DNA of 64,000 nucleotides from Chlorokybus atmophyticus. Its lineage: Eukaryota > Plantae > Mesostigma and Chlorokybus algae. Below, one piece after another: positions 48,301-49,111 of the stretch. Below the pieces are notes generated by a model. The model searched no databases, was not told the DNA's origin, and saw only the letters and a program-made list of their open reading frames with translations. Location: the NCBI GenBank assembly GCA_009103225.1, contig RHPI01003536.1, positions 79,697 through 143,696 of the forward strand. Direction: 5' to 3'. Position 1 is the stretch's first letter; the number at the start of each line of letters is the position of its first letter. Made by a program: the position numbers and the translations under genes.

Positions 48301-49111
48301 TTTGCTTGTGTTCCAAGCTATGCGACCCTTTTACAGACAACGTTACACGCTTACGACCCTTTTTCACTGTGCACAACCGTGCACCAGTATCCAATGTCAT
48401 TTTAACATTGTCCTGCCATTCCTGTCCTAGTACCACATCAACACCCATTATGTTGATGGACACCACTATGAAGGTGAGATTGGCATGATAATTACCAATC
48501 TTTACCTTCATTTTGATTTCTCCTTTCACTGGTAACGTACCCCCAGCACCGGCAGCTGAAAATGCTGAGGGTTTACACGCTACTTTATTGCGCACAACCC
48601 ATTGTTCCTCAATAAAATTGTGCGTTGCACCAGTGTCAATCAAGAACGAACTGGTTATTCCCTGCATTGTGCCACTAAATGTCCACAACAGAGGCACAAC
48701 CCGTCCTTGAAATGTAGCCAAGAGTCCGTGACTAATGCGAGGGTTGAGTAAAATTGCTGACAATCGCACTGTCCCTGTTTCACGCTTGCTAAATTGCTTT
48801 AACACAGTTCCCCCTCGAGTATGTTTCAACCATGGGCCATGATACTTAGGCACCATTACTACCACACTCAAAGTTCTGTGTTTACTTTGCAACTCAGTCA
48901 AAGTGTGCAACACATTGGTAAGCATGTTAAATTCCACATGTACCAACACACAAGCATTCTCTTCCACTTTTGCAACGTCAAAAAGTGGCAACTTGCTATG
49001 TGTTTGCCATGCGTGTGTCATTACATGCACTTGGGACAGCTCATCAAACCAGTTTGCTAATAACACAAGCAACTGGCCATCAACCACTTTTACATCAGTC
49101 ACGACGTAATC
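45344..49111 (-). CDS. pol: Pol: extra N-terminal domain, aspartic protease, RT, RNase H, integrase, chromodomain; in frame with gag behind a single TAG
   Basis: PR [76 protein letters not shown]...CDKC, [23 protein letters not shown]; chromodomain [10 protein letters not shown]...[21 protein letters not shown]. No internal stops in 1252 aa. Confidence 0.97.
   Translation of the reverse strand, partial: [1255 protein letters not shown]

Follow-up and report, generated by a model that had tools for sequence, protein, structure and literature searches.

A probable vestige of a DAM methyltransferase domain at the start of Pol in a Ty3/Gypsy chromovirus of the streptophyte alga Chlorokybus atmophyticus

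DAM domains in long terminal repeat (LTR) retrotransposons were first reported by Fernandez-Moreno et al. (May 2026; bioRxiv 10.64898/2026.05.21.726589), who named a 'Chlorophyta DAM-chromovirus-like clade'. In that preprint, the DAMs of eukaryotic transposable elements (TEs) formed one clade beside prokaryotic Dam, their Asn-Pro-Pro pocket was stated to be preserved, no activity was obtained in E. coli, and DAM-LTR copies were richer in N6-methyladenine (6mA). It was proposed that DAM helps the elements to exploit AMT1/6mA chromatin, and the absence of DAM-LTR elements from Metazoa and Streptophyta was cited as support for such coupling to 6mA. The terms 'inactive' and 'pseudo' do not occur in its main text, and the lone 'degenerate' refers to TE-derived remnants (orphan DAM-only) rather than to dead domains of LTR elements that are otherwise intact. 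Here, we have analyzed a 64,000-nt stretch of DNA of Chlorokybus atmophyticus, a streptophyte alga of the class Chlorokybophyceae (assembly GCA_009103225.1, contig RHPI01003536.1, positions 79,697 to 143,696). The whole stretch is called the window below, and all positions are its own. On its minus strand lies a single LTR retrotransposon, a Ty3/Gypsy chromovirus of Chlorokybus, in which the segment between gag and protease is our subject. The kind of element has already been described; what is new here is that the host is a streptophyte and that the DAM domain is a dead relic which Pfam does not see.

Like the Chlorophyta DAM-chromoviruses, the window element is of Ty3/Gypsy type, has a C-terminal chromodomain and carries a DAM-homologous domain, and its core from reverse transcriptase to integrase (RT-IN) nests among relatives with an intact DAM. 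It differs from them in its host, which is a streptophyte and not a chlorophyte, and in the domain itself, which has no Asn-Pro-Pro in the catalytic pocket, is half eroded and is invisible to Pfam. A domain of the same small Dam/PCIF1-like N6-adenine methyltransferase family occurs in another group of retroelements, the DIRS1-type retrotransposons (Poulter and Goodwin 2005; PMC4738411). Iyer et al. 2016 (PMC4738411) placed the DIRS1 methyltransferase domains in the PCIF1 clade, argued that many copies are inactive, and suggested that they may act without catalysis, through transcript binding or PCIF1 mimicry. DIRS1-type elements are marked by a tyrosine recombinase in place of a DDE integrase, by the lack of a protease and by inverted or split repeats. 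However, the window element has direct LTRs, a protease, an rve DDE integrase and a chromodomain but no tyrosine recombinase, and its domain lies between gag and protease. With regard to the phage and bacterial Dam proteins (PF05869), catalytic relatives of the window element match model positions 19-96 of 169, including VW.NPPF, whereas the window segment is scoreless against the model and has lost motif IV and the cofactor-side lobe. In PCIF1/CAPAM, the cap-specific RNA methyltransferase that forms N6,2'-O-dimethyladenosine (m6Am; structure 6irx), the NPPF strand, the helix and the VP.W strand align with the relatives' profile, and PCIF1 is among the fold matches of the window model; the similarity is nevertheless weak (E = 0.02), there is neither a WW domain nor a helical domain, and the window copy is dead. 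DNMT3 in charophyte Gypsy and dinoflagellate DIRS/LINE elements (de Mendoza et al. 2018, PMC5890265) and MBD in arthropod Copia (PMC6673714) are likewise cases of a chromatin or DNA-modification domain within a retroelement polyprotein, but they involve another enzyme family and another position, and the module in the window is decaying rather than newly acquired.

The segment occupies the N-terminus of Pol, whose amino acids (aa) are numbered from the codon after the gag stop. The features that bear on it are as follows:

48692-49111, minus strand: aa 1-140, the part of pol ahead of the protease, with the DAM-derived relic in full, unalignable flanks included
48779-48982, minus strand: alignable core, aa 44-111, with the motif IV strand, a long helix, a strand ending in VP and a W...G..L..F segment
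48929-48940, minus strand: HVEF, aa 58-61, at the site of catalytic motif IV, where relatives have N-[PA]-P-[FY]
48416-48673, minus strand: aspartic protease domain (Pfam), with its DTG at 48629-48637

The protease DTGA has its Asp at pol aa 159, with 48637 as the first base of the codon, and 158 codons lie upstream of it. A first-pass annotation made from the letters alone had placed about 155 codons before the DTG at 48637; its coordinate is correct, the peptide that it quoted is what the frame encodes, and HVEF lies where it was said to lie. Pfam protease models begin at about aa 147, which leaves roughly 140 extra aa ahead of them.

A search with pol retrieved thousands of chromovirus-like pol proteins, mostly metagenomic, of which the closest 120 were used; relatives from named sources include Haematococcus, Chromochloris and Closterium. 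Precomputed Pfam matches to Dam (PF05869) were present in 13 of these 120, and in the seven that were rescanned the match sits N-terminal of the protease; in P0120, for example, aa 44-118 match model positions 19-91 of 169 with 37 bits. A recognisable domain is present at the matching pre-protease position in about 75 of the 120. Among motif-bearing domains, in which VWLN[PA]PF is present, 26 of 27 match Pfam Dam (best E = 1.2e-10, best score 41.8 bits), and six also match PCIF1_WW, a Pfam model named for PCIF1. The relatives' domain follows the pattern F.LD.C...G.N.LC..F.S...FL...VWLN[PA]PF...HY...K...P..TSACILVP.W....LL.GM.L...P.G...P..V.YDPP, and when the pre-protease regions are aligned, VLVHVEF of the window is matched with VWLNPPF, and its VVVMVP with ACILVP. 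The placement of HVEF at motif IV, which the first-pass annotation had proposed, was recovered in the same register by MAFFT, by hmmsearch/hmmalign and by hhalign. The first-pass annotation had also asked whether relatives have N(A/P)PF at this site: 24 sequences have NPPF, NAPF or NAPY. Other relatives show decayed strings in this column (HPPY, NPPA, DPPP, NVQA) or unrecognisable ones.

Profiles of the relatives also find the window segment. A hidden Markov model (HMM) of 26 motif-bearing relatives scored it at 8.7 bits (E = 7e-5 with one target), a value reached by none of 2000 shuffles. An iterated profile, which was built on the relatives' N-termini with the window left out and which recruits 75 of the 120 proteins, matched window aa 44-111 at 35.5 bits (E = 5e-13), with 10.3 bits as the best of about 1900 scored shuffles. 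A profile of the dead clade only gave 36.8 bits (E = 2e-13) and one of catalytic sequences only 10.6 bits (E = 2e-5), while hhalign, run with the window sequence alone against the alignment of catalytic relatives, gave E = 3e-4 in the same register, in which phmmer matched P0054, P0037 and P0036 as well. Scores of the relatives against the catalytic profile run unbroken from 225 bits down to the 8.7 of the window, a series that, judged from these scores, is one of graded decay without two separate classes. In the PDB, the only sequence matches of the profile of catalytic relatives were to PCIF1/CAPAM (E = 0.02-0.07; 6irx at 0.02). Thus, as far as sequence comparison goes, the segment is shown to be homologous to a Dam-type (PF05869-like) N6-adenine methyltransferase domain. 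The Dam-type assignment of the first-pass annotation is supported, with one qualification: the alignable part is aa 44-111 only, and in aa 1-43 and about 112-146 similarity to anything was undetectable.

On its own, the segment yielded little. A word-indexed homologue search limited to pol aa 1-140 found nothing, and a scan of metagenome contigs gave 146 pattern matches of which none was confirmed. The motif [NDSH][PA]P[FYW] was not found in the first 450 aa of pol, and the AlphaFold2 (AF2) model from the single sequence was unusable, with a predicted local distance difference test score (pLDDT) of 37. Against 1.84 billion representatives, the sole phmmer matches of the 140 aa were P0121 and P0122, which BLASTP and Pfam identified as spurious; they are bacterial or tandem-repeat proteins whose score is a sum of many weak repeated stretches.

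The erosion of the window copy is extensive. With HVEF in place of the (D/N)-P-P-(Y/F/W) motif IV of PF05869, Asn-Pro-Pro is lost, in line with the first-pass proposal of a catalytically dead domain. Of 25 positions with a conservation of 85% or more among the catalytic sequences, the window retains only 4. Nine conserved positions fall in the unalignable parts, six of them in the N-terminal lobe and three (Pro/Asp) towards the C-terminal end. The N-terminal lobe reads F.LD.C...G.N..C in relatives, with invariant Asp, Gly and Asn, and all six of its conserved positions are gone in the window; the conserved Trp before motif IV is lost too, and the Phe that follows the lost NPP (F61) is kept. 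Because both Asn-Pro-Pro and the entire N-terminal lobe have been lost, the window copy cannot be an enzyme. Identity comparisons point in the same direction: the window and P0006, its nearest RT-IN relative, are 59% identical in RT-IN and 17% in the DAM region, compared with 58% and 43% for P0006 and P0118, which both bear the motif, and the DAM region of the window is 12-25% identical to any relative. On the basis of the motif, the conserved positions and these identities, the DAM region of the window is dead, and it has diverged much further than the remainder of pol.

With a 71-sequence alignment, AF2 gave a model with pLDDT 72, in which the means of ten-residue blocks are 83-91 over about aa 51-120 and a strand-helix-strand-strand pattern is seen. 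Nearly all Foldseek matches of this model in the PDB were S-adenosylmethionine (SAM)-dependent methyltransferases, of which the majority modify adenine at N6 (RlmJ, KsgA, T4 Dam, E. coli Dam and PCIF1), and the viral structures of BFVD gave mixed, non-significant matches only. The model and its matches are consistent with a partial methyltransferase fold, short of proof.

A quick maximum likelihood (ML) tree of the RT-IN core (LG+G4, 89 rows) has an 85-row clade that contains all DAM-bearing sequences, and plant and Closterium chromoviruses without DAM fall outside it. The window nests within this DAM-bearing clade, in a set of 21 rows, 9 of them catalytic. The tree requires six or more changes of catalytic state, and one 27-row clade is wholly dead or undetectable. 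Of the recognisable domains in the relatives examined, about two thirds have lost motif IV. Where cores are equally similar, dead-dead pairs are much less alike in the DAM region than catalytic pairs; for cores that are about 62-67% identical, the values are 23% and 58%. Whether the window lost its motif independently of the large dead clade was judged from evidence on both sides. The grouping of the window with P0006 (HPPY) and P0118 (NAPF) (SH-aLRT 91) favours independent loss, as does the gag-pol junction, which is UAG-GA in frame in the window and in the catalytic relatives L006, L007 and L009. However, a tree in which the window belongs to the dead clade was not rejected by an approximately unbiased (AU) test (p = 0.27), and the better score of the relic with the dead-clade profile than with the catalytic one weighs in the same direction. 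A dead DAM relic was also seen in P0081, a gene model of Chromochloris zofingiensis, which has VLIAMSA in the motif column and scores 107 bits with the family profile. Because this host is a chlorophyte, loss of catalysis is not confined to the streptophyte host. In Haematococcus lacustris, the related chromovirus pols P0001, P0003, P0011 and P0019 had no match to the DAM profiles.

Selection on the pre-protease region was measured by codon analysis of four pairs of relatives, whose contigs were fetched; synonymous divergence (dS) is saturated in two of the four pairs, for which only bounds are given. The values of nonsynonymous divergence (dN), dS and their ratio (omega), and the dN ratio of the pre-protease region to the rest of pol, are:

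P0007/P0010, dead: pre-protease dN 0.20, dS 0.70, omega 0.29 (rest of pol 0.15); dN ratio 2.7; nonsynonymous below synonymous with p = 3e-7
P0026/P0033, dead: pre-protease dN 0.25, dS saturated (gene-wide at least 1.4), omega at most 0.18; dN ratio 2.2; nonsynonymous below synonymous with p = 6e-18
P0049/P0045, catalytic: pre-protease dN 0.205, dS 1.59, omega 0.13; dN ratio 1.45; p = 1e-20
P0052/P0062, catalytic: pre-protease dN 0.185, dS saturated, omega not computable; dN ratio 1.34; p = 3e-33

On these codon comparisons, the dead DAM domains are relaxed, yet not neutral.

The remaining features of the element, all on the minus strand, are listed here in the direction of its transcription:

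51771-52343: second LTR copy in tandem, 98.8% identical, parted from the next by a single 'n' at 51770
51197-51769: 5' LTR, 573 bp
49115-50641: gag open reading frame (ORF) of 509 aa, in which Pfam finds the Retrotrans_gag capsid domain together with a CCHC zinc knuckle
49112-49114: in-frame UAG that terminates gag; GAU is next and pol carries on in the same frame
47465-47944: reverse transcriptase (RVT_1, Pfam)
46904-47278: RNase H (Pfam)
45587-46645: integrase with H2C2 zinc finger, rve core and SH3 (Pfam)
45371-45523: chromodomain at the C-terminus of pol (Pfam Chromo, E = 8e-17)
45222-45234: polypurine tract, immediately upstream of the 3' LTR
44876-45221: 3' LTR, truncated at 44876, with the first 346 of 573 bp left and 99.7% identity to the 5' LTR

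The pol ORF runs from 49111 to 45347 (1255 codons, stop-free), and the coding capacity is intact for gag, protease, reverse transcriptase, RNase H, integrase and the chromodomain, the last of which the first-pass annotation had also recognised. The element thus combines the parts of a DAM-chromovirus: a Ty3/Gypsy pol with protease, reverse transcriptase, RNase H and integrase, a chromodomain, gag, LTRs, and, between the gag stop and the protease as in the relatives, a DAM-homologous domain in the polyprotein. We infer from the junction that pol would be expressed by read-through of the gag UAG; no unusual RNA structure was found downstream of this stop (z = -0.06). In the dead-clade loci L001, L002 and L004, pol overlaps gag in a different frame, which implies expression by a putative frameshift and therefore two probable expression strategies in one element family. 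The tandem LTRs around the 'n' may be an assembly join and not biology. Another partial copy of the same LTR, 99.8% identical, is located at 63550-64000 and reaches the window end; about 120 bp are absent at its lower end, and it is a solo LTR or part of a neighbouring copy.

We consider it probable that the segment is a vestige of a DAM domain, that is, of a small Dam/PCIF1-like N6-adenine methyltransferase, which now serves at most as a folded spacer. In such a history, the ancestor of a large green-algal clade of Ty3/Gypsy chromoviruses would have had a DAM domain at the N-terminus of Pol. In the Chlorokybus copy, the relic would be translated as the first part of Pol, to judge from the reading frame; its capacity for methylation is gone, just the central strand-helix-strand core survives, and it would now be at most a folded spacer or processing segment ahead of the protease. 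The relic frame stays open because a stop or a frameshift would kill everything downstream, namely protease, reverse transcriptase and integrase; the first-pass annotation had taken the stop-free frame as a sign of function, an argument that carries no weight for the same reason. The intact gag and pol ORFs and the near-identical LTRs suggest, short of proof, that DAM catalysis is dispensable to the element for its propagation in this host.

Several points weigh against this reading. With its truncated 3' LTR and an 'n' at the joint between the tandem 5' LTRs, the copy is not demonstrably autonomous. Pfam gave zero matches on aa 1-123, 1-141 or 1-158, even at E <= 10; the direct check against Dam (PF05869) that the first-pass annotation had proposed was part of this outcome, and the gathering score of the model (28.1 bits), which 26 of the 27 motif-bearing relatives reach, was not attained. 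Catalytic relatives are part of the alignment that drives the AF2 model, and its Foldseek matches in the PDB are weak (E = 0.007-0.09, TMq 0.35-0.40). Two related dead-domain lineages are under clear purifying selection (omega about 0.29 and at most 0.18), and the selection figures come from pairs of relatives, since the searches made here retrieved no close copy of the window family for dN/dS. The description as vestige or spacer is itself our interpretation.

The purifying selection on the dead-motif DAM regions of P0007/P0010 and P0026/P0033 is also what might be expected if the dead fold had been repurposed as a pseudo-enzyme, kept for putative binding of DNA, 6mA DNA or its own RNA, or for PCIF1 mimicry, and acting with the chromodomain in targeting or in evasion of silencing. 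F61 as an aromatic residue and the secondary-structure pattern are retained, and such non-catalytic roles are those proposed by Iyer et al. 2016 (PMC4738411) for the inactive DIRS1 domains. However, the dead regions change 2.2-2.7 times faster than the rest of pol in nonsynonymous rate, compared with 1.3-1.5 times for catalytic ones, and residual constraint is to be expected anyway for any folded polyprotein segment that needs protease processing. The window copy keeps about half of the fold; since it retains only 4 of 25 conserved positions and its N-terminal lobe is unrecognisable, a vestige or spacer is likelier than a specialised reader, and we regard repurposing as quite unlikely. In a wider form, selection would maintain dead DAM as a non-catalytic module in many lineages of LTR retrotransposons, Chlorokybus would hold the first trace in Streptophyta, and loss of catalysis would track the loss of host AMT1/6mA; binding of nucleic acid or 6mA, or PCIF1 mimicry, might be the role of such modules. 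This generalisation appears unlikely to us. On Chlorokybus, the literature search turned up nothing about either AMT1 or 6mA. A different doubt concerns the substrate of the ancestral domain, for which cDNA, an RNA:DNA hybrid and RNA are candidates. This domain may have been PCIF1-like and RNA-acting, so that the label 'Dam-type DNA' would be right in fold family and wrong in substrate. That PCIF1/CAPAM alone is matched in the PDB by the catalytic-relatives profile (6irx, E = 0.02), that 6 of 27 members match PCIF1_WW, that the DIRS1 methyltransferase was placed in the PCIF1 clade (PMC4738411), and that retroelement DAMs yielded no 6mA in E. coli (bioRxiv 10.64898/2026.05.21.726589) all fit this idea. 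It is nevertheless doubtful, although worth keeping in view: 26 of 27 members match Pfam Dam, with better E-values than for PCIF1_WW, no WW domain is present, and the preprint phylogeny has the eukaryotic TE DAMs as one clade beside prokaryotic Dam, with more 6mA on DAM-LTR copies.

The two remaining explanations are at opposite ends. If the likeness to methyltransferases were due to chance, the segment would be an unrelated, lineage-specific linker, as might be thought from the lack of any Pfam match, from the phmmer search that returned two spurious repeat proteins only, and from the 12-25% identity to any relative. Yet the profile E-values of 5e-13 and 2e-13 with clean shuffle controls, the register that is consistent across independent methods, the same position in pol as the relatives' domain, and the continuous intermediates among relatives (225 down to 8 bits) are hard to reconcile with chance. 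In view of the matches to the 75-relative and dead-clade profiles, the linker is refuted for practical purposes, and we hold it to be very improbable. A methyltransferase that is still active through an unconventional active site has the retained Phe of motif IV as its sole point; with Asn-Pro-Pro and the preceding Trp lost, and nine conserved positions lying in unalignable parts, among them the Asp and Gly that are invariant in the N-terminal lobe and the Pro/Asp near the C-terminal end, it is extremely improbable.

Other parts of the window were also characterized. At 1-3060 (plus strand), cut by the window start, there is a different Ty3/Gypsy pol fragment with reverse transcriptase, RNase H and integrase, which shares about 40% identity with the main element in RT-RNase H and about 26% in the integrase. 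Two host genes were recognised on the plus strand. Pieces of one at 19927-22727 encode WD40 repeats and a Utp12 domain, and it looks like a protein of the U3 small nucleolar ribonucleoprotein (snoRNP) or small-subunit processome. The other, at 30480-31616, is a front-end desaturase gene (cytochrome b5 and FA_desaturase) whose ORF reads through short introns; its three stretches of exon match the JGI Chlat1 protein Chrsp122S00078 with 100% identity, and the next match has less than half of the score. Chlat1 is the portal of Chlorokybus atmophyticus, and the match thus identifies the host. A tandem repeat with period 207 (2.8 copies, 76% matches) occupies 4656-5232 in a low-GC block (GC 0.435 for 4001-6000), and a second low-GC block is found at 26001-30000 (GC 0.40-0.41), where ORFs overlap on both strands at about 28150-28840.

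For annotation, the approximately 140 aa ahead of the protease are to be read as a domain relic and not as a linker. Since the dead domain is invisible to Pfam, domain-based screens under-count the DAM family. With motif IV lost on at least six occasions and two dead lineages still under purifying selection, the role of a dead methyltransferase in the polyprotein becomes a question in its own right. The DAM-chromovirus lineage has reached, or persisted in, an early-diverging streptophyte alga with its domain dead, and if Chlorokybus indeed lacks AMT1 and 6mA, this would provide a natural test of the idea that these elements are coupled to 6mA.

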